The notes: generated by a model from the letters alone, not told the origin. Counted from the stretch's first letter, positions 51,276 through 63,283 are shown. The stretch is DNA of 64,000 bases from Epithemia pelagica (GCA_946965045.2 OX337230.1:1488001-1552000); one strand, 5' to 3'. Made by a program: numbers and translations.

Positions 51276-52463
51276 TGAATCACTAACGAAACGAACAGAA
51301 AAAGATATGAACAATCTCAATTGTCAATGCGCTCCGGGATCGAGTTGTTGATCAAACTTTGTCGAAGCAAGAACGACCACCTATATTTGTTATTTGTTTA
51401 AAATTCTGCAATTTTTTATGTTTTTGTGTACGAAGATCAAAGGGGATTTAATTGAATATGTTCTGTTTTTGGATATGGGTCATTATATTTTCTCGAGCGG
51501 TCATATGGACAAGACTTAAGCAAAACAATTCAAAATACAAATTTAACCCGCTGGAAGAGTACGCTCTAATACGTTTTTGAGAATATGGGATTATCTACTC
51601 CTCATCGGGTATCTCCACAAGACCAATGGACGATTAACTAGGAAACGAGTGCTGTTCACAAGCATACCCTAACGGTCATCAAACGGATTTTCATCAATAT
51701 GGATATGCGTAGTGTGAAGCTATGTGTAGTCGTTGGTAGCGAAGCGTGGCTCTCTACGCTCAGAGTGTAGAGCTCATAGTACAAGGACATGGCGCATCTG
51801 CGCTCTCAGATCTCAGAGCCCCACCTTGCCATACAAATCCTTCGTTGCTTCTACATGTGTGGTGGTGCTAAGGATTGGTGATCCGTTTCGTTGCCACCCA
51901 GGACGGTTATCTGCGTCCGACCGAAAAATTGGGGCGCTGCTTCTTGTGCCTGCTGCCATCAGCGCAATCCACACGCACAAACACCCCTCCACACCGACAA
52001 GAGAACAAAAACCACGCAAAACGCCACAACGACTTGTATTGTATCGGTGAAATAGACCAGGTAAAGGCATCGAGGAGATCTTTCCCTGGAAGACCATAAC
52101 AAAGACAACGAGAATTGTTGATCTCTCTCTGCGCTGCGGATTCGTCACACGTGAATGAGATCAACGCAACAAGGCTCTTGGATTGGTTGGAAACGACTCG
52201 TGCTGGACGAGGCTATTAAAGGCGGAGGAAGAATAGAAACGGCACACCTTGAGGCTTTACCTTTGGAGGATCATCTGAGGAGCTAGCCTTCTCCCTTTGA
52301 GGAGCAAGGAAACGGGATAGTTCGTGCGCATTGGGTTAACCTTCTGCTTTCAAGCCAAGACTCGATCTCGACCAAAATTTGCACATCAATTGAGAAGCGG
52401 GAGCCAGTGACTTTTTTTCCGGAGATTTGAGAGACGTAACTCATTTATTTGGAAGGATCAACT

Positions 52464-55400
52464 ATGACTTCTCTTCGTCTTGCCTTAAAGCAATCATTGG
52501 AAGAAAGCAGCGGTGGATTCTCTCCTCCCTCTTTGGGAAGTGACAACCATAACAGCACCAATAATCCGAATTTCAACGCACCACCGTCATCTCCGGGTGG
52601 CTCCCGAACTGGAATGTCGTCTCCCACGAATGGTGCTTCCTCCTCGGCTCCTGGTCATTCCACCAGTGCTTCGTCGATCAATCCTCACAATAGCAATCTT
52701 AGTCCGCAACCATGGAAGAAACGAGGACCAGGAAGACCGCGGAAAACCCAGCCGCAGGATGGAGGAACCGCGAAGAAACGTGGACGGCCCCGAAAACTCC
52801 CTGCCTCCGAAGAACAGCCCGGACATGAGGAACACTCTAGCAGTGAAAACGAATTCTCTGGAGAGGAAAACGACGATATAGAAGAAGAGCAATCGAGAGA
52901 GGCTGCTGAAGAACAAAAGGCATCCTCCAAGCCGTTGAAGAAGAAAAAAGCACACTCCACTATGACTGGTGCGGTTATCGTACCGAACAGAGAGAGTCAT
53001 GCAGAGCCGGTCGAAAGCTCCGAGGTGAAAGCCTCTGTTGCGAGCACGGACGTCGATCATACTTCTAGCAATTACGTCATACCTTCCAACAAAGAAGGTA
53101 ATATTGTTGCTCACTCTTCCTCTAGAGAGAAGGAGCCTGATGAGGGCAAGCCATCCAAAGTCAAGACTGTTCCTCCTCCACATCCACGTGTGCTTTCTTG
53201 GTCACGCAATCTCCCTGTCAAAGAGGTGCGCCAAAACGTCAAACAAGGAATTCGGGTCAAGGTACGCTTTGCCACGAAAGCTAAAAAGGAGGGCAAGCGA
53301 AAAAAGAAATGGTACGGAGGACTTGTATCGCAAGTTTCTAAGGCAGGCTCGAAAATCCGGATAAAGTATGATGACGGTACTTCGGAGGTGGCACGATTTC
53401 CAGACAAAGACATTGTTGTGGACGCAACTTTCAATGGAGAACATCAATGTTCATCCGAGTTCTTTGATCCACCAGAGGAGGGGATGTCTGGGGGTGAAGA
53501 GGTAGCACTAGATCACCAGCCATCAGGACAAGAACAGCCAGAAACAAACCCAGCACCAAGAGAGAAAACAGAAACTTCCACCACTGCCACAACAAGTGGG
53601 AGTGAACATCCAGAACCAGTTGCGAGCGCTTTGTCATCGTCCGAGACGCTAAGTCCAAGAGAAAGTTCCGAGAATTTGATGAATGCGGAAGTGCAAGAGG
53701 ATTCCTTGAAGCCTCTGAACGATCTGGAAGCTGTAAAATCTGCTCCGTCTGTCCCAACTTTGATGGAACCAGAGATAAACATCTCAAAGGATACGTCCAA
53801 CGATCAGCCTGACGAGTCATTAGCCATCAAGCCAAAACGTAAGCGTGGGCGTCCACCCAAAATCCGGTCGCAGCAGCTGAATAATGTGGCATCAAACGAG
53901 GAAATAATTGGTCCAAAAACTGGTGACAAGAGCATTGACCCTCTACGCTCAGCCGCTTCCCCTGTTCCGACTGTGGAATCAACTAATCCCCTTGTGGATA
54001 CTCCTGTACTTGATGAACCGAAGCAGAAACGTGTTCTCGACAATTCCAAATTGGATCCAATGGAAGTTGAAGAGCCGACAACAGGAAAGGATCATTCAGA
54101 GAAGGTCTCAGCGCAAATGGGTGGTTCAGAGGAGGACAAACAGAAATCGAAATTGCTCTCTATAAGAATTCCGAAACTGAAGAGCTCTCTCGAAGAAGGA
54201 AGCGCTGATTCTTCGAAAAACCTTCCAACCAAACCAGAGAAGTCTCCCCGCCCTGCGATATTCTCTGAATCGAAGAAGGACCAAGAGAACCACGGAGCCA
54301 CAAAAAGAATTCACATTCACTTGGCTGGACCGAAGTCTGTTGTGGCCAAAGAGACGAAGGAGATTCCCTCCACCCACGAAAGCCAGCATTCGACGATCAA
54401 AGGCAGAACAACCCCAGTTCCAATTGTTTCTGCTCATAAACATGAGGAAGAGGAAGTAAGAACACCGGCCTCACCACGATCCAAGAAAGTGAAGCGGAAG
54501 CGAGTCGAGTCATCCCCTAATAGTAACCGACCACGTTCTCCACGATCGCAAGCTGAAGAGGCCAGTGAAAAGTTTGGATCTGCTGGCAGTGCTTTCGAAA
54601 AGAGTACTTCTGGTGGTAGCACCACCCAAGTAGTAGCAGAAGAAGAAGAAAACAGCAAAGCAGTCACTCCGAAGGGACGACCGGCTAAAGTGGATGCTGC
54701 GCGATCTGCCAGACGCTCTGCGGCAAAGGAAGCTAGCGACCGATTGTTGAACAAACAAGAAGAGACAGTGGTCAAGAAGAAAAAGAAACGAGATCGTCGG
54801 AGGGAAGTAGAAGGTGAAGATTCGGATCGCGAAGAAACGCAGCAACAAGCTCCTTGGGTTCAATGCGACAAATGCAAAAAGTGGCGAATCATTCCAAGTG
54901 AAGTGGTTGGGTCGCTCCCTGAACGGTGGTTTTGCGAGGACAATGTATGGGATCCGAAGCGTGCGAGCTGCGATGCACCTCAACAGAAAGATAAACAAGT
55001 TGTTCGCGAAAAGAAGCGTAGGAAACGTCAACGACTTATGGAAAAGGCAGCTGCTGAAAGCAGGGCCACAGCTGATATACCGGCAGGGGCCGTTAGCGAT
55101 GAATCTAACGAGCATGAGAATAGTGCTGCATCTCGGTCGCAAGAAGATATGGAAGAGGTTATGAAGAGGCCTCGACGAGCTTCGCCCACCGAAAATTCTG
55201 ATTCCAGCATGAACAACAACGAACAGAAAACCGAGAAGAAGTCCAACACGAAGAAGCTGAGAAGCCACACCGCCGAGGTGATGGAGCTGCAGGAAGACGA
55301 AGGTGGAGCCGACTTGAAACCGCGTGGTCGCGGACGTCCCCGTCGCAACCTCGTAAAGGAAACATGCACACCGGTTAACCCGGAGCAAACCCATGATGAA

Positions 55401-56282
55401 GCGGATAATGTTGAGTGGGTACAGTGCGAAAAATGCGATAAATGGCGAAAACTTCCGCCTCATATATCCGCAGATGAACTTCCAGAGGTCTGGTATTGTT
55501 CTATGAACACCTGGAATCCTGCGTCAGCTAGCTGCAGTGCTCCGGAAGACAAAGCAGAGGCTGGTCTGACCGATATATTCAGCAATGGTGCCGCTAAATT
55601 GTCATACCGCAATCTCATTTTCGGTAACGGCCGCAAATTCAATCGTCCCATCTCCGAACGAACCCGCGCGGCAGAGTCCCTGTTCGCAGCCGTATCAGAC
55701 GACGCAGATGCCCCGCCAACAGTGACATATGCCAGCTCAAGTGCATTCATTTCACGGAGCAAACTGAATCAACCCGAAGAAACCGATGGACTTTCAGTGC
55801 TCGAGCTGATGAGTCGTTCTCAGTTGTGGAAAGAGCTACATGCAATAGCTGCTGCAACGAATGGGGGTTTATGTGCTTTTGATAGACTGTCAAATGAGAC
55901 GAAAGAGTATATTAGGGACCTCATTCTTCACTCGCTGGGAAGCCGGACGATGTCTGGGGAAGAGGTGGCAAACGATATTCAGCATCGCAACTGGCAAAAT
56001 GTTCCTCTTGGATGGGCCGCAGCTAAACCGCATTGCACTGTGAATATCATCGTGATGACTATGTGTGAACTGGTGAAGGAAGGTGTGCTAGAATGCATGA
56101 AGGAGTTTGATGGTCGTACAAAGGATTCTTTTTTCTTGACTTATCGACGAGCCAAGTCGTATTCGCAAGCCACATTACAAAAGCCAATCCCATGTCAAGA
56201 TGGCGGAGAAGTTGGTCCGCGTTGCATGAAGTTTGCCAAGCCTTGGAAAAGCGCGGAAGGCGGGGATGAATCGATCGGATAA
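52464..56282 (+). CDS. Chromatin protein with AT-hooks, a Tudor-like domain and two CW-type zinc fingers
   Basis: RGPGRPRK, KRGRPRK, KRGRPPK, RGRGRPRR; KWYGGLV...IRIKYDDG; WVQCDKCKKWR...WFC and WVQCEKCDKWR...WYC. Confidence 0.85.
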   Translation: MTSLRLALKQSLEESSGGFSPPSLGSDNHNSTNNPNFNAPPSSPGGSRTGMSSPTNGASSSAPGHSTSASSINPHNSNLSPQPWKKRGPGRPRKTQPQDGGTAKKRGRPRKLPASEEQPGHEEHSSSENEFSGEENDDIEEEQSREAAEEQKASSKPLKKKKAHSTMTGAVIVPNRESHAEPVESSEVKASVASTDVDHTSSNYVIPSNKEGNIVAHSSSREKEPDEGKPSKVKTVPPPHPRVLSWSRNLPVKEVRQNVKQGIRVKVRFATKAKKEGKRKKKWYGGLVSQVSKAGSKIRIKYDDGTSEVARFPDKDIVVDATFNGEHQCSSEFFDPPEEGMSGGEEVALDHQPSGQEQPETNPAPREKTETSTTATTSGSEHPEPVASALSSSETLSPRESSENLMNAEVQEDSLKPLNDLEAVKSAPSVPTLMEPEINISKDTSNDQPDESLAIKPKRKRGRPPKIRSQQLNNVASNEEIIGPKTGDKSIDPLRSAASPVPTVESTNPLVDTPVLDEPKQKRVLDNSKLDPMEVEEPTTGKDHSEKVSAQMGGSEEDKQKSKLLSIRIPKLKSSLEEGSADSSKNLPTKPEKSPRPAIFSESKKDQENHGATKRIHIHLAGPKSVVAKETKEIPSTHESQHSTIKGRTTPVPIVSAHKHEEEEVRTPASPRSKKVKRKRVESSPNSNRPRSPRSQAEEASEKFGSAGSAFEKSTSGGSTTQVVAEEEENSKAVTPKGRPAKVDAARSARRSAAKEASDRLLNKQEETVVKKKKKRDRRREVEGEDSDREETQQQAPWVQCDKCKKWRIIPSEVVGSLPERWFCEDNVWDPKRASCDAPQQKDKQVVREKKRRKRQRLMEKAAAESRATADIPAGAVSDESNEHENSAASRSQEDMEEVMKRPRRASPTENSDSSMNNNEQKTEKKSNTKKLRSHTAEVMELQEDEGGADLKPRGRGRPRRNLVKETCTPVNPEQTHDEADNVEWVQCEKCDKWRKLPPHISADELPEVWYCSMNTWNPASASCSAPEDKAEAGLTDIFSNGAAKLSYRNLIFGNGRKFNRPISERTRAAESLFAAVSDDADAPPTVTYASSSAFISRSKLNQPEETDGLSVLELMSRSQLWKELHAIAAATNGGLCAFDRLSNETKEYIRDLILHSLGSRTMSGEEVANDIQHRNWQNVPLGWAAAKPHCTVNIIVMTMCELVKEGVLECMKEFDGRTKDSFFLTYRRAKSYSQATLQKPIPCQDGGEVGPRCMKFAKPWKSAEGGDESIG

Positions 56283-56673
56283 TTTGAAATACATGGGTGA
56301 GGGTGAGGCTTCTGTCTTCTACTCCTAGGTAGTTTCAACTGGATTGGTTTTGATAATAGTAGGAGATATGCGAGAGGATGTGAGCACTACGGTAGATACT
56401 CCTATCAGTACCTAGAATAGGAGTACATCTTACATTATTTTGTCTATTGTCTTTGTGGGATTTGTTAGGTAGGCTATTCACGAACGACAAGAAGTCTTAG
56501 GAGTAGGGTAGTTGTTAGATTATCTTATTTATTCGTAGGAGTAGTTTTCTAGTTAGCCTTTTTCAGAAAGATACGCGTTTGTCTGAAGAAGATTTCGTTG
56601 GAACGAAATTCCGTCATGGCGATCGGAGCCGATAGAGGCCGGAAGTGGGACCCTTTCGTTTACAACTCTGAAG

Positions 56674-59600
56674 TTGGAGGAGTCGATGATGGATGAAGAT
56701 CTTTACCCACCATTGAAGTCCAGTTACGCTCAAAATAGAGTTACTGTCAGAGCCGGTGGACGAAAAGTCCACGCGAGCACGAGAAGAAAGAACTTGTTGG
56801 ATAACCTTCCGAATGGTTGCCACCAGTTCTTCGTGCATATCCACATACTGCACCGACGAACAATTGTGGCAGTGATGTCAGTCTTGCTATCTCTTTTGTG
56901 CCCAAGAAATGGTTGGGCTTGGAAAAGTGCATCACCAGTTGGCAGGGTTTTACGTCCATTCGACCAAAGTGTACCTCGGCCAGTGTTATCATTTGGTCCT
57001 TTTTGCTGTGATGCTTACTATGGTCCACTACATCTTTCTCCCCATCGACAATTTTCTTTGTCAAAGGCAAGTTTTCAAGGTCTTCCAGATAGAAACAGAC
57101 CGTCCCGACAGGAATCGTCTCGACTCATGTGGAGGAGTTCCACATCTGGTGATGTCGACGAAATGCTTCGCCCATGTAGGCATGAGTTTTCTACTTCTAC
57201 CAAAGTTATCGAAAGTATGCCATTTCAGGACATGGAATCTGTGGAATACGCACAGGGTCGGTCATTTTTTACTTCAACTTCTTCTGACCTCCGCTCAATG
57301 AATACCGCTGCACAGGACGTCATAGCTGGTGGAAACGCCGAAAGAAAAGACATTGGATTCCGTGTAAAAGCACCCTTTCTTCCAACCGGGGATCAACCCG
57401 AAGCCATACGAAAGCTATTAGAACAGATGAAGGACCGATGCTATCCTAGGGCCATTCTTCGAGGAAGGTATGACCAACGAAATCTCCATTGAATGTTGAA
57501 TGGAAGATAAAGCCCTCTCGATTCGCTAAGTTTCTGACATGAACCAACTGTGTACTTTACTTTCAGTACAGGAACAGGGAAGACTCTTGTAATGAGCCAT
57601 GTCATTGCCGGGTTGCAAAAACCAACTTTGGTTTTGTGCCACAACAAGACATTGGCGGCCCAGCTCACACGTGAGTTGCGATCGTTTTTGGGAGAACATA
57701 GTGCTGTGGAATTATTTGTCAGCTACTATGATCACTACATTCCGGAATCATTCAAAGAGACCACGGGTAGGTATATTGCCAAGAAATCGTCCATCAATAA
57801 CGATATCAATGCATTGCGACATTCAGCCACTCGTGCCCTGCTAACTCGACGCGATGTGGTAGTCGTGGCTACTGTTAGCTGTATCTATGGACTCGGATTG
57901 CCCAATGAGTACTTAGATGCTAGCGTGGAATGGGAACAGGGTCAAATTCTTCCGTTTGGAGGAGAAGTGGACGAAGAACGAGAAATGGAAACAGATATGG
58001 GACAAAGTACAAGATCAAGCAAAGCTTCCTTTTCTCAGTCACTTCGGGAAATGAGATATCAGCTGGTCGAAAATGACGAAGAGTTTAAGCCTGGCGCATA
58101 TCAACACCTGACGGCGCCACGAGGCGGGGACGAAGAGGCGACTCTTATTCAGTATCATCAGATTACTTTGTGGCCTCCTTACGACCAGTTCCCTGTTTCG
58201 GTTTGGTTCGAAGAGCACCAGCAGTTGTCCTCCGACGCAAATTGCAACGGTCGTCAGTACTATAGAATATCTTCTGTAGCTCAGGGAACTCCTCAAGGAA
58301 TGGTTGGAGTTCAATCACTCCATATTTTCCCCGCGGCTCATCATGTTGTTTCAGAGGAAAACCTAGAAAAAGCCTGTTGTTCCATTGAGGAAGAATTGCA
58401 TGAACGAATGAGGGAACTGAATGATCAAGGAAAATCTGAAGAATCAGCCAGGTTACAAGCACGTGTCCTTCAGGATCTGTCTCTTTTGAGAGAAAATGGG
58501 TTTTGTTCAGGAATGGAAAACTACAGCAGACACATGACTGGTCGGGATCCGGGTGAGCCGCCCGATACTTTGTTGGATTTCATGGCACGAACATTTTCAG
58601 TGAGGGGATCTCCGACCAACGAGAAAAGAGGCTCCGTCAATTCTGATTGGCTCTTAATTGTTGATGAATCTCATGTTACGTTACCTCAAGTGGCGGCAAT
58701 GTACCGAGGAGATCAATCACGCAAGCGCTCTCTAATCGATAACGGCTATCGATTGCCGTCCGCTTTGGACAATCGACCACTCAATGAAAAAGAATTTTGG
58801 AAGGCTATCTCCCAAACTCTGTTTGTCTCAGCTACGCCAGGTAAAAAGGAGTTAGACATGCTGAATAGAGACCGGAGAAATCTTCTTAATACAGAGAAGG
58901 AGGACAACCTTAATCCCGTTGATATGGTAATCCGTCCGACGTACGTTTGCGACCCCATCATAGAGGTTCGTCCGAAGACAAAAAGCGTACAAGATTTGAC
59001 GAAAGAGATTGCAAAACGAGTTCAAAGCCAAGAGCGTTCATTGGTGGTCACATTGACCAAACGAGACAGCGAGGATTTTGCCTGTACGTTTATAGTTGTT
59101 TTTGTTTTCTTTTTGTTGTTTTTTGTTCTTACCCGGGAAATCGCAGCTTATCTTGCTCAACAAGGGATACAGGCCACATTCATTCATTCTGGTGTAAAAA
59201 CAGAAGAAAGGAGTTTTCGCATACGGCAGTTGCAAGGTGGTGAGGTTGACGTAATAGTGGGTGTGAACTGTTTACGGGAAGGTTTGGATCTGCCCGAGGT
59301 ATCTTTGGTTGCAGTTTTAAACGCGGATTCTGAAGGGTTCTTACGATCTGATACCGCTTTGTTACAAGTCGTTGGAAGGGCAGCACGAAACAAGAACGGA
59401 CTTGGTATTTTCTATGCCGATCGGATAACATGCAGTATGAAACGATGCATGGACTTGACCCATACACGACGACAAACTCAGCTCGCCTACAACAACAAAC
59501 ACTCTGTTACGCCCCAGTCCACAAAAGGGTCCTCCACAATGTCCATTTTCGAGTTGCTGGAGGATCAAATCAAAGCTGAACAACATGTCCAAATGGACAA

Positions 59601-61365
59601 AGGGAATAGAAATGATGGTCTGGAAATGATGGGATTCTTGGATCTCCATACAGCCAAAAAGAGCACATCAACTGAAAGCCAAGCTCCAAACGTGAATGGC
59701 AAACTGATAGATACTGATCACATACCTTCTTCACCTGGTGTTTACTTATGGAAAGACGAAGATGGTGGAATTCTCTACATTGGAAAAGCTTCAAAGCTTC
59801 GATCAAGAATACGATCTTACCTTTCTCCTAGCGCCAATCACGGACCCCGGATCCATTCAATGGTACAAAAGGCAGTCTCCGTTGAATTCACGCTTACCCC
59901 AAGTGATCGAGACGCTCTCGTCCTCGAGTCAAAGTTGATCAAGAGACACCGTCCGCAGTACAATGTTTTGATGAAAGATGATGAACATTATCCATATATA
60001 TGTGCCACTGTCGGGGACAAGTTACCGCTGTTCAGGATAGTCCCGCACATTCCATCCGATCATCATGATGTAGCCTCGTCGAATTATTCTCATCGTTACT
60101 TTGGGCCGTACACAAACTATCAAGAAATCAATAAAATACTGGAGGGGATTGAGGAAAAATTCGGATTGCGTGAGAAATCATTCCTAGTAAGACAGGGCTC
60201 TGGCTTTTCTGTCGACGAGTACAACTCACTGTTTCAAAAGGTTCTTTCGGAAGTATTCACCTCTAAGTCCCACAATTCCTTGCAGGAAATGCGTTCCGAG
60301 TACGAAGAAGCAGGTCTGCTTTTCGACTCGCCTTACAATGAGTGTCGAGACGTTGTAACAGTTGTTCCTGTTCCAGAGAGCAACGGGGATTGTATGGTCC
60401 ATGTTGTGCAGCTTCGTCAAGGCTGCGTCATCGGTGAATTCTCGTACGTGTGTGAAGTCGGTCCTCTTGGTGATGGAGTTGTTGAGCTAGCTGAGTCTTT
60501 ACAGATGGTGTTGGAAGACCGTCATTATCCGTCTGGCGGAGAAATAGCGGATCAGGCACTTTCTTGGTTTCCGAACAATGTTTTGCTTCCATTTGAAATT
60601 CCTGATCCTGCGAGGTTACGAAATGCAATGAAATCTGCTCGTATTCGGATGGAACCGAAGCGCAGAGGGAATATTCAAATTCAAACACCGTGTAAGAGGG
60701 GCAAACGAGTGGACCAGGATAAGAGAGCACTCCATTTTGCGGAAGCGAATGCTCAGTACAAAGCTTCTCAAAGATCATTAGGAGGATTTGTGGCAACATC
60801 AATTGACGGAACGGCGGTTAAGGAACTAGCTCGTCTTCTCTCCTTACCTCGGGGTCCTTCCAGGATTGAGTGCTACGACATCAGCCACACGCAGGGTGAA
60901 CAAACTGTCGGTTCACGTGTGGTATTCGTGGACGGCAAGCCCGCACCAAAGCTTTACCGGACGTTCAACATAAAAGGTGTCGACGGTATCGATGATTACG
61001 AGAGCCTTGCCGAGGTCATGAGACGTCGTTTCTCTAGAGCCCAGATTGATGAAACAGGGACTCCTGTTGAACCTTCAGATCCATGGGCCATTCCGGATCT
61101 TGTCGTTATCGACGGTGGCCGTGGTCAGCTGGGAGCGGCTCTGAAAGGGATATCCCATGTAACCAGGCCCAATTTTCCATCTATTCCTATATGTGCCCTT
61201 GCAAAAGGCCAGGAAGATCTCTTTGTGCCAAACTCAGCTACGGCTGTTAACGGTTCGCCCAACTCACCAGCACTGTTGCTTCTGCGCCACCTTCGTGACG
61301 AAAGCCATCGGTTTGCACTAAAGGCTCATCGCAATCGGCGGTTCAAAAACCTCTCACGGGACTAG
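56674..61365 (+). CDS. uvrB-uvrC: UvrB-UvrC fusion excinuclease (introns 57468-57566 and 59084-59146; start uncertain, candidate ATG 56875)
   Basis: PTGDQPEAI, STGTGKT, HNKTLAAQL, SYYDHY, CSGMENYSRH, VDESH, SATPG, EGLDLPEV, GRAARN; GIY-YIG PGVYLW..YIGKA..RSRIRSY..LESKLIK..PQYN; RNase-H-like ECYDISH, VIDGGRGQ, RDESHRFA. Confidence 0.92.
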
Positions 61366-61967
61366 GAGCATATAAGAAGAAACTAACTCCATACCAGACT
61401 GTGTAGGTAGTTCGTCTCACATTTTTATACTACAGTAGGAAGTTTTTGTACAACCGGGAAGTAGTTTCGTGCGAGTCGCGCGGTTTCCCTCTCGTGTGTG
61501 ACACTTGTGTGACACTTTGTGACATGGCTTCCAGGAAATTCTCACTACCTACACAGCTTGATAGGGAGTAAGTTTACTACTTCCCTCTGTCTGGCCGTCC
61601 TCTCGCGTCGGGCGCGCCCGGCTTGTCGGGAGAATGACTCGACGGGCAATTGTCTTGTCGGGCGTGCGCCCTCCTCGACCATTGCCCTCCTCGTCATTCT
61701 ACCCTCCGCGCCGGGCGGTCCCTCCTTGAAAGGACTCGACACCGGGAAGTATTAATACTAACTTAATCCTTAAGGCTTGCTCCGATCTGGTTATGGGTCC
61801 AAGGATAAGTACGGTTTAAGAATAAGATTTAAGATTTAAGACATTCAGTAGTCACCCAGTAGTTACAGTGTGGTCTAATTTTGATCGAATAGAGTAGGAA
61901 ACTATTCGCATGGACATTGATAATTGATTCCTACATACTGGGTTGACTGGCGAAATTACCGAAATAT

Positions 61968-63283
61968 CTAGAGAATGTTGCAGGCTCCGCAGGTTTGCAA
62001 AATTTCGGGATTCTGCTGCAACGCTTGGAACAAACTCATGAGGGCTTCTACCTTGTAATTCTCTGGTACAGCCATTTCCTCTTGTTCCCCATCGGCAACA
62101 AATTGGAAAGGTAGATCCAAAACGGTTCCGGAGTGACAACAATCCATCTGATGTTACGTTTCCCGAAGATAATATGAGTAAGTGTCGTAAGACAATGGTG
62201 CTGCAGCTAGAGAGAAATAAATGACTTACCAAGCAGGTCATAACCACGCCTCGAGCCATGGGGCCAACAAGAGTTTTAAAAAGGTCATCATCGCGAATTT
62301 GACCACTTGTTGTATAGTCAACTGGGATTAAAGTTTCATCAAATCCGTCCTCTTCATCCCCGTCGTCGTCACGTAGCTTGCCTCCATGGCCTGGTAACGC
62401 ACAAAACCTATGTGAGCGTCTGAAACCACATTAAGACGGAATCCCCATAGACTCTGTCGAGTTTCACTCACCAGAGTAATGGCAAAATACAACATCTCCT
62501 TCTTGACTATCTTCCACGAGCTGGCGATAGGCAGCCAGAATATTAGACCGAGTAGGAGGTGTTTGCTGTCCGTCGTCCATCAGAATAGTAATGTTCTCGT
62601 CACGAAAGCCATGGACGTTTTTAATATACTCAATCTTTCGCATGTAATACATTATTCAGATGAAGATGGTCCATGGTAGCAGCCAGTCGCCCAGCACGTT
62701 GCGAACTTACCATGTTGTAACCATCATTATGGCAACCAGAGAGTTCTCCCTGTTGCCCCACGTAGTTAATGGCAATGACGACAGCACGGCGTGTACCTGA
62801 TTCATTTTCAGGAGGAACCAGGTCAAAGGGAGCGCGAATATCGAACGGTCTGCTACTGGACAATTGAGGAATCTGCGAAAAGTTTTTCGACGCCAACATC
62901 AAACGCATTTTCAAAAGAACTTCCTGAAAACTCAACGCAGTTTCAGGAGTTTTGTGGTCTTCATAAACCACGTTGAGCAAAGCTGAAGTGCATGCTCCAC
63001 CCGCACGACCTGCTGGATCAGGCAACTTGAATGAAGCAACATTGGAAACATCGGCCGAGGTTTGCTCATCACGACACCCAGAAATCATTCGGACGGTCGC
63101 AGGAATGTACTGCCATGCAAGGAGGTGTGAAATGCAATCGATATGTGAGAATAAGTGTTGAGTGTTCGCCCATTTTCAAGACACTCTTGAAGGGAAGAAA
63201 AGGTCGATCGACGAAGCGTCAATATGAAGTAAAAGCTTTCTACACACCTCTTCCGCTTTCTTGAGAATTTCTTCGGATGACAT
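61968..63283 (-). CDS. Type III (p10-p20 permuted) metacaspase, 5 exons (63283-63248, 63109-62711, 62634-62472, 62390-62230, 62147-61968)
   Basis: p10 [23 protein letters not shown] precedes p20 [37 protein letters not shown]. All introns are GT-AG. Ends TCGACNIL*. Confidence 0.9.

Follow-up and report, generated by a model that had tools for sequence, protein, structure and literature searches.

We have identified, in a stretch of 64,000 nt from the pennate diatom Epithemia pelagica (GCA_946965045.2 OX337230.1:1488001-1552000; hereafter the window, with positions counted from its first letter), a gene in which a UvrB helicase and both nuclease domains of UvrC are joined in one protein. The UvrB-UvrC fusion is one nuclear gene, transcribed and spliced, which occupies 56686-61365 on the plus strand in three exons, and its spliced coding sequence (CDS) is open and encodes 1505 aa. 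Judging from the sequence, we find it fairly likely that the product is a single-chain excinuclease, in which an active UvrB is tethered to both UvrC nucleases, and that it works in the plastid stroma. The chloroplast of this diatom probably has a bacterial-style excision repair.

Gene structure and transcript

The two introns of the gene were first predicted by reading the DNA, and were later compared with contigs from four public runs (X1-X4) of the same organism that were matched to the stretch. In run X4 a single contig of 3353 nt corresponds to 56625-57465, 57565-59083 and 59147-60138, so that exactly both predicted introns are gone. This contig reaches from the 5' leader through the whole of UvrB, across the fusion junction and into the GIY-YIG domain, and overlapping X4 contigs continue without a gap past the stop codon to 61388. 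The contigs of runs X1-X3 are genomic DNA and colinear with the window. As one spliced contig crosses the fusion junction, we are dealing with a single transcript and not with two genes, one of the points on which the initial annotation had said that its reading could fail. Its proposal of an in-frame fusion of a full UvrB helicase to both UvrC nuclease domains is borne out by the open CDS, by the Pfam and NCBIfam matches given below and by the junction-spanning contig. The introns it described as spliceosomal are real, as both are removed in the X4 contig and both are conserved in Epithemia clementina, where they measure 95 and 66 nt and have positions and phases identical to those of introns 1 and 2.

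Open reading frame (ORF) finding returned a frame at 57550-61365 (1271 aa) and an upstream ORF at 56674-57492, both with UvrB/UvrC homology. The gene was originally taken to span 56674-61365; the end holds, while the start has to be moved, since position 56674 is a TTG and the first ATG of the main frame is at 56686. All elements of the gene lie on the plus strand. A 5' leader (56625-56685) is covered by the spliced X4 contig (record 25), which starts at 56625. Exon 1 (56686-57467) encodes an N-terminal extension of 224 aa followed by the start of UvrB, where the motif F-R-V-K-A-P-F-L-P-T-G-D-Q-P is found from about 57358; the first 28 positions of the NCBIfam UvrB profile fall at the end of the upstream ORF, with positions 2-28 matched in this exon. 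Intron 1 (57468-57566, 99 nt, GT..AG) splits a Ser codon (AG/T) just before Walker A. According to Pfam, NCBIfam and alignments, exon 2 (57567-59083) holds Walker A, the beta-hairpin, a diverged UvrB domain 2 at about 57940-58360, UvrB_3rd, DESH and the start of the C-terminal helicase domain. Intron 2 (59084-59146, 63 nt, GT..AG) is in frame and free of stops.

Exon 3 opens with the rest of the UvrB helicase, including motifs V and VI and PF12344 (59147-59574; Pfam and alignments), and the UvrB homology stops at the point at which a bacterial UvrB would continue into its linker and UVR domain. In place of the C-terminal UVR domain of UvrB the family alignment shows an unconserved linker of about 50 aa (59575-59721). 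It is followed by the UvrC GIY-YIG nuclease (59722-59982; PF01541, 5.4e-10; aligned to PDB 1YD6 and 1YCZ), the central region of UvrC with its RNase H1-like platform (59983-60831; PF22920, a weak match) and the UvrC RNase H-like endonuclease (60832-61317; PF08459, 4e-44; aligned to PDB 2NRR, 2NRT and 3C65). The reading frame ends in a short basic tail with a TAG stop (61318-61365, the stop itself at 61363-61365), and the transcript contigs are colinear through the stop.

As intron 2 is open in frame, ORF finders and the automatic model P0001 translate through it. P0001, which is the public model of the same gene, starts inside UvrB (M-S-H-V-I-A-G...) and is without exon 1, and it carries intron 2 as a false insert of 21 hydrophobic residues in the helicase domain.

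Two further joints were seen in the RNA-like run X4, and these omit 60139-60229 (91 nt) and 60635-60847 (213 nt). Both are bounded by CT..AC on the plus strand, equal to GT..AG on the minus strand, and the X4 contig depth climbs from 93 to 344 toward the 3' end of the gene. The extra joints along with the rise in depth suggest that a spliced antisense transcript overlaps the UvrC half, and it may be a read-through of the metacaspase gene described below, which lies on the minus strand.

Active sites, missing modules and presequence

Pfam recognised ResIII, Helicase_C, PF12344 (UvrB family), GIY-YIG, UvrC_RNaseH and the UvrC RNase H endonuclease (4e-44) in the protein, and NCBIfam matched UvrB at 1e-186 and UvrC at 4.7e-90. 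The UvrC whole-protein score was 302.9 for TIGR00194, above the cut-off of 285.45, and 259.8 for NF001824, under the cut-off of 451, while an NCBIfam match to Cho (3.9e-11) was far under its cut-off. The C-terminal 435 aa of the UvrB part are 45-48% identical to bacterial UvrBs.

That the catalytic residues are intact, as originally claimed, was confirmed by alignment to solved UvrB and UvrC structures and by the family alignment. The SF2 helicase motifs I-VI of UvrB are present, among them Walker A (GTGKT), DESH and GRAARN (motif VI), and they are conserved in 16 of 16 aligned family members. Aligned to the solved UvrB structures, Walker A, the beta-hairpin region, DESH and motifs V-VI are conserved; the beta-hairpin reads Y-Y-D-H-Y here against Y-Y-D-Y-Y in bacteria, a change of Tyr to His found in the window gene and in most diatoms. 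The catalytic set of the GIY-YIG domain (Tyr, Tyr, Arg, Glu and Asn) is complete by alignment to solved UvrC domains. The Asp-Asp-His triad of the RNase H-like nuclease is present within I-E-C-Y-D-I-S-H, I-D-G-G-R-G-Q and R-D-E-S-H. In the family alignment the active-site columns are conserved in every member inspected.

We also compared the gene with its counterpart in Epithemia clementina, a fusion with 69% protein identity to the window protein. The mature parts are 71% identical in amino acids with synonymous sites saturated, and dN/dS is about 0.05 overall and 0.05-0.21 per segment where computable, the value for domain 2 being 0.21. The high amino-acid identity together with the low dN/dS shows that both halves are under purifying selection. 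The presequence and the linker are 25% and 47% identical, respectively.

Several modules of the bacterial proteins are missing. The initial annotation had stated that the UVR coiled coil was unrecognisable, and UVR (PF02151) indeed gave no match at E<=10 in the UvrB C-terminal and linker piece (bacterial UvrB control, 4.1e-10) and none at E<=10 in the UvrC piece between the nucleases (bacterial UvrC control, 1.6e-10). At the UVR motif of UvrC a shortened, degenerate remnant aligns and nothing more. The linker varies in length and sequence across the family, and the Pfam matches there consist of the PF12344 tail alone. With the iron-sulfur (FeS) and UVR motif definitions for UvrC taken from PMC10085695, the Cys-rich FeS motif CX6-14CX3H/QX3CX3C after GIY-YIG was found deleted in all 16 aligned algal fusions. 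The tandem helix-hairpin-helix domain, (HhH)2, is also absent, as the initial annotation had it: the window protein stops 16 residues past RDESHRFA, where bacterial UvrC goes on into (HhH)2, and no HhH-like exon was found downstream on the plus strand up to 64000. The truncation is family-wide, with termination 10-45 residues past the RDESH motif in 16/16 aligned algal fusions.

UvrB domain 2, which in bacteria contacts UvrA (PMC12796330), has diverged as well. PF17757 gave no match on the excised piece even at E<=10, and phmmer leaves the region unaligned, though the domain 2 fold may persist despite the undetected profile. Among the 120 best fusion matches PF02151 occurs in none and PF17757 in two, while nearly all listed bacterial UvrBs carry both. 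The Pycnococcus fusion retains PF17757 (1.8e-9). A stand-alone relative, P0198, retains PF02151. The idea that covalent fusion has replaced docking gains support from these data, as the losses are family-wide and the UVR domain is found in the stand-alone protein and in 0/120 of the best fusion matches.

The N-terminal extension was previously read as a bipartite plastid presequence. We find a signal-peptide-like stretch from Met64 to G-W-A (56875-56919) with a predicted cleavage before Trp79 (56920-56922), and after Trp79 follows a positively charged region rich in S, R and P. The Epithemia clementina counterpart is nearly the same (M-S-L-L-L-F-L-V-V-P-R-N-G-H-A/W, with cleavage between A and W). 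An aromatic residue at position +1 of the signal-peptide cleavage site is a mark of diatom stromal plastid proteins, whose presequences of the 'ASAFAP' type have F, W, Y or L there, and a signal peptide with A/F-or-W is reportedly the plastid signal of diatoms and not a mitochondrial one. A Met start combined with an extension of 40 aa or more is found in 71 family members, and 53 of them show a hydrophobic core and then F or W. In 37 of these 53 orthologues the first F/W is directly preceded by A, S, G or C, where composition alone would predict 28%; it should be noted that the site rule applied here, the first F/W after the core, undercounts sites such as S-A-L-A/F in Cyclotella. The mean net charge in the 25 residues after the site was +3.3 in the family scan. 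The Triparma and Cylindrotheca models are without a hydrophobic leader, and these models may be 5'-truncated. Taken over the family, N-termini with a signal peptide and A/F-or-W argue for the plastid. The earlier reading of the presequence is thus strengthened at the level of the family, while in this gene the signal-like stretch is N-terminal only if translation starts from Met64.

Proposed function and its alternatives

The localisation, the dual incision and the mode of loading we infer as follows. The presequence would be of the diatom bipartite type, composed of a signal peptide, an aromatic residue at +1 of the cleavage site and a transit-peptide-like region, and the mature protein of about 1280 aa would most likely act on plastid DNA in the stroma. 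There, in an ATP-dependent step, the UvrB part would hold the damaged strand clamped behind its beta-hairpin. The GIY-YIG domain, kept close by the flexible linker instead of a UVR-UVR coiled coil, would cut 3' of the lesion, and the RNase H-like domain would then cut 5' of it; in bacterial UvrC the GIY-YIG domain makes the 3' incision and the RNase H-like domain the 5' incision. Contact between UvrB and UvrC is required for the 3' incision and not for the 5' incision, and (HhH)2 aids the 5' incision alone and does not serve as the principal site of DNA binding (PMC10085695). In the diatom protein the covalent link would hold both nucleases at the UvrB-DNA pre-incision complex, and such permanent tethering could have allowed the loss of four modules, namely both UVR docking modules, (HhH)2 and the FeS motif. 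Loading may be independent of UvrA, as reported for the bacterial UvrBC complex, which can locate lesions without UvrA (Springall et al. 2018, PMC5814901), or may go through another partner.

The proposal can be set beside known systems. The helicase motifs, the beta-hairpin, the GIY-YIG site and the Asp-Asp-His triad are shared with bacterial UvrB and UvrC. These are however two polypeptides, whereas the diatom protein is one, without UVR on either half, FeS, (HhH)2 or a recognisable domain 2, and its gene is nuclear and intron-bearing with a long organelle-type presequence. The bacterial UvrBC complex is likewise a lesion-locating unit of UvrB and UvrC (PMC5814901), which the fusion would make permanent; the bacterial unit is held together by UVR domains and serves as a minor backup route, while the diatom link is covalent and the docking domains have been lost. 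Cho and Cho-like UvrC homologues are also natural variants without C-terminal modules (PMC1564403), but Cho consists of the GIY-YIG half alone and docks on a separate UvrB, while the diatom protein has both nucleases. The plant 'UvrB/UvrC motif' protein AT2G03390 has a 36-aa UVR motif and no enzyme domains, and the diatom protein is the reverse, with enzymes and no motif.

Some of our data weigh against a stromal excinuclease of this kind. The UvrB scores, obtained with a query without exon 1, lie below the equivalog cut-offs of TIGR00631 and NF003673 (622.2 against 743 and 616.7 against 750.1, respectively). Bacterial UvrC without (HhH)2 has a lowered 5' incision (PMC10085695), and dual incision is for this reason not guaranteed here. 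Finally, 63 codons separate the first AUG (56686), which is part of the transcript contig, from the signal-like stretch downstream, so an N-terminal signal peptide requires a start at Met64. The segment ahead of Met64 begins with acidic residues and shows no conservation with Epithemia clementina, where an in-frame stop limits the leader before the hydrophobic stretch to 25 residues. We also note an upstream ORF of 26 codons in another frame (56616-56696), within which the first main-frame ATG falls; its own ATG would lie just ahead of the contig, which begins at 56625. This upstream ORF could favour initiation at Met64.

Of the alternatives, the one that survives best leaves the same enzyme in the same plastid location and gives it a job other than classical lesion excision, as a helicase-nuclease on other structures. 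Candidate substrates would then be stalled replication or transcription complexes, R-loops, crosslinks, or plastid DNA undergoing turnover. We regard this as unlikely, though worth keeping in mind, given that PF17757 went undetected in the window protein and is seen in just 2 of the 120 best fusion matches, that several UvrC accessory modules are gone, and that a different combination of the domains in Prymnesium parvum (see below) shows a flexible reuse of the parts. On the other hand, the residues for damage verification and for both incision chemistries are kept under strong purifying selection. The conserved set is what nucleotide excision repair (NER) needs and goes beyond the needs of a generic helicase-nuclease, and bacterial UvrBC can locate lesions without UvrA (PMC5814901).

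A second alternative accepts NER in the plastid and differs in the loading step, with a classical three-protein system in which a plastid-targeted nuclear UvrA would load the fused UvrBC as in bacteria. It would fit with an old algal UvrB that probably arrived with the plastid, as the stand-alone UvrB of a red alga is cyanobacterium-like with a detectable domain 2. The Pycnococcus fusion has kept PF17757, and domain 2 is still constrained relative to Epithemia clementina at the dN/dS given above. The positions R183, R194/R196 and R213/E215 (Bacillus caldotenax UvrB numbering), which we take to be the UvrA contacts as reportedly described for that protein, are however not conserved in the diatom fusions, and we find the three-protein system distinctly improbable.

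A single-chain excinuclease in the stroma also has to be set against a mitochondrial or dual-targeted protein that serves mitochondrial DNA, for example by means of two in-frame starts. Met1 and Met64 would give different N-termini, the upstream start is within the transcript contig, and no hydrophobic leader is seen in the Triparma and Cylindrotheca models. The region before Met64, acidic at its start and unconserved, and in Epithemia clementina just 25 residues long, speaks against this, as do the signal peptide and A/F-or-W shown by most family members, which are said to be plastid-type, and the possible 5' truncation of the leaderless models. We consider a mitochondrial role very improbable.

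The genomic surroundings are those of a eukaryotic gene. Upstream lies a gene for a 1277-aa protein with two zf-CW fingers (52449-56282, plus strand). Downstream, at 61852-62652 on the minus strand, is a probable metacaspase gene, split by introns, with a weak Peptidase_C14 match (E=0.005); the label follows the annotation at the syntenic Epithemia clementina locus (L003). The order zf-CW, UvrBC, metacaspase is conserved at that locus despite the saturated synonymous sites. An artefact, either bacterial contamination or two adjacent genes read as one, has only the bacterial ancestry of the domains in its favour and a negligible chance, and is ruled out by the introns conserved in a second diatom, the junction-spanning spliced contig, the eukaryotic syntenic neighbours and the continuous frame.

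Between the fusion and the metacaspase gene, 24 nt past the stop, lies a stretch of 376 bp (61389-61764) whose contig depth exceeds that of the gene 100-500-fold, which marks it as a high-copy repeat. It is not in the contigs of X1, X2 and X4, which pass from 61388 to sequence resembling that after 61764. The repeat is bordered by the short direct repeat A-C-T-A-A-C, and no second copy was found within the window. Apparently a small repeat element has inserted in the 3' region, and the insertion is polymorphic.

Distribution, origin and significance

The same architecture was found in the diatoms Epithemia, Seminavis, Cyclotella, Nitzschia, Cylindrotheca, Pseudo-nitzschia, Thalassiosira profunda, Mayamaea, Fistulifera, Amphora and Extubocellulus. 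It also occurs in the bolidophyte Triparma (Triparma laevis), the green alga Pycnococcus provasolii and several eukaryotes from MMETSP and metagenomes. The haptophyte Prymnesium parvum has another combination (P0184), with the UvrC RNase H nuclease (118-256) ahead of the UvrB helicase (470-1065) and a C-terminal HRDC; a GIY-YIG domain was not detected in P0184, which is thus a second UvrB/UvrC fusion in a permuted order, and its HRDC may stand in for the HhH DNA anchor. UvrB alone is found in models from Erythrolobus (red alga) and Cladosiphon (brown alga). For the red-algal UvrB nearly all named best matches are cyanobacterial, and domain 2 is still detectable.

To place the UvrB part we built an unrooted maximum-likelihood tree of 45 rows and 614 columns, with a narrow sampling of bacteria from outside Proteobacteria, Bacteroidota and Chlamydiae. 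All 20 sampled fusions fell on one side of a branch with support 95/92, present in 92% of the bootstrap trees. All algal UvrBs were split from cyanobacteria and other bacteria at 100/99, with long algal branches and no sister group resolved. This fits with one old algal UvrB lineage, possibly plastid-derived, and a single fusion event. A specific bacterial donor was considered and rejected, as the best bacterial matches of the UvrB half are all about equally close, at 45-48% identity, and are spread over Firmicutes, Calditrichota, Aquificota, Methylomirabilota and Actinobacteria, so that no donor stands out. No bacterial UvrB-UvrC fusion turned up in a degenerate-pattern scan of 185,579 prokaryote genomes, which gave two loci in all, a UvrB of Colibacter and a UvrC of Desulfatiglandales.

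In the literature, a 2006 census of GIY-YIG proteins included no eukaryotic UvrC (PMC1564403), and flowering plants are without UvrA, UvrB and UvrC, with NER seemingly absent from organelles (PMC6981420). AT2G03390 and a plastid homologue of TRCF/Mfd have been cited as hints of an NER-like activity in plastids. A paper in Genetics from 2024 states that "all eukaryotes lack UvrABC genes" (PMC11228841). Databases name the algal fusions automatically, as 'excinuclease ABC subunit B' or 'exonuclease uvrABC'. We found no published account of a eukaryotic UvrB, UvrC or fusion in the full-text literature, a coverage that leaves out most subscription journals, and the widespread algal fusion family is apparently undescribed. 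The papers that did come up dealt with bacteria or with the plant UVR-motif protein. On the question of earlier descriptions, which the initial annotation had raised, the answer is divided: dozens of public algal assemblies already contain the fusion with automatically assigned names, so that the gene as such loses novelty while the biology keeps it, and no paper describing the fusion was found.

For a large part of the marine phytoplankton, the fusion family contradicts the view that UvrABC genes are missing from all eukaryotes. Further, we speculate, with considerable doubt, that many plastid-bearing algae own a self-contained one-chain excinuclease and with it a true chloroplast NER, in which the covalent link has made UVR, (HhH)2, FeS and possibly UvrA dispensable, and that a fusion of single origin has spread between green and red-derived lineages. 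The family offers a natural experiment for repair enzymology, on which UvrB and UvrC modules become dispensable on tethering and on whether UvrBC can work without UvrA. If the enzyme is stromal and active, diatom plastid DNA has a dark repair for UV photoproducts and bulky adducts, and this would bear on plastid mutation rates and on the UV tolerance of major primary producers.

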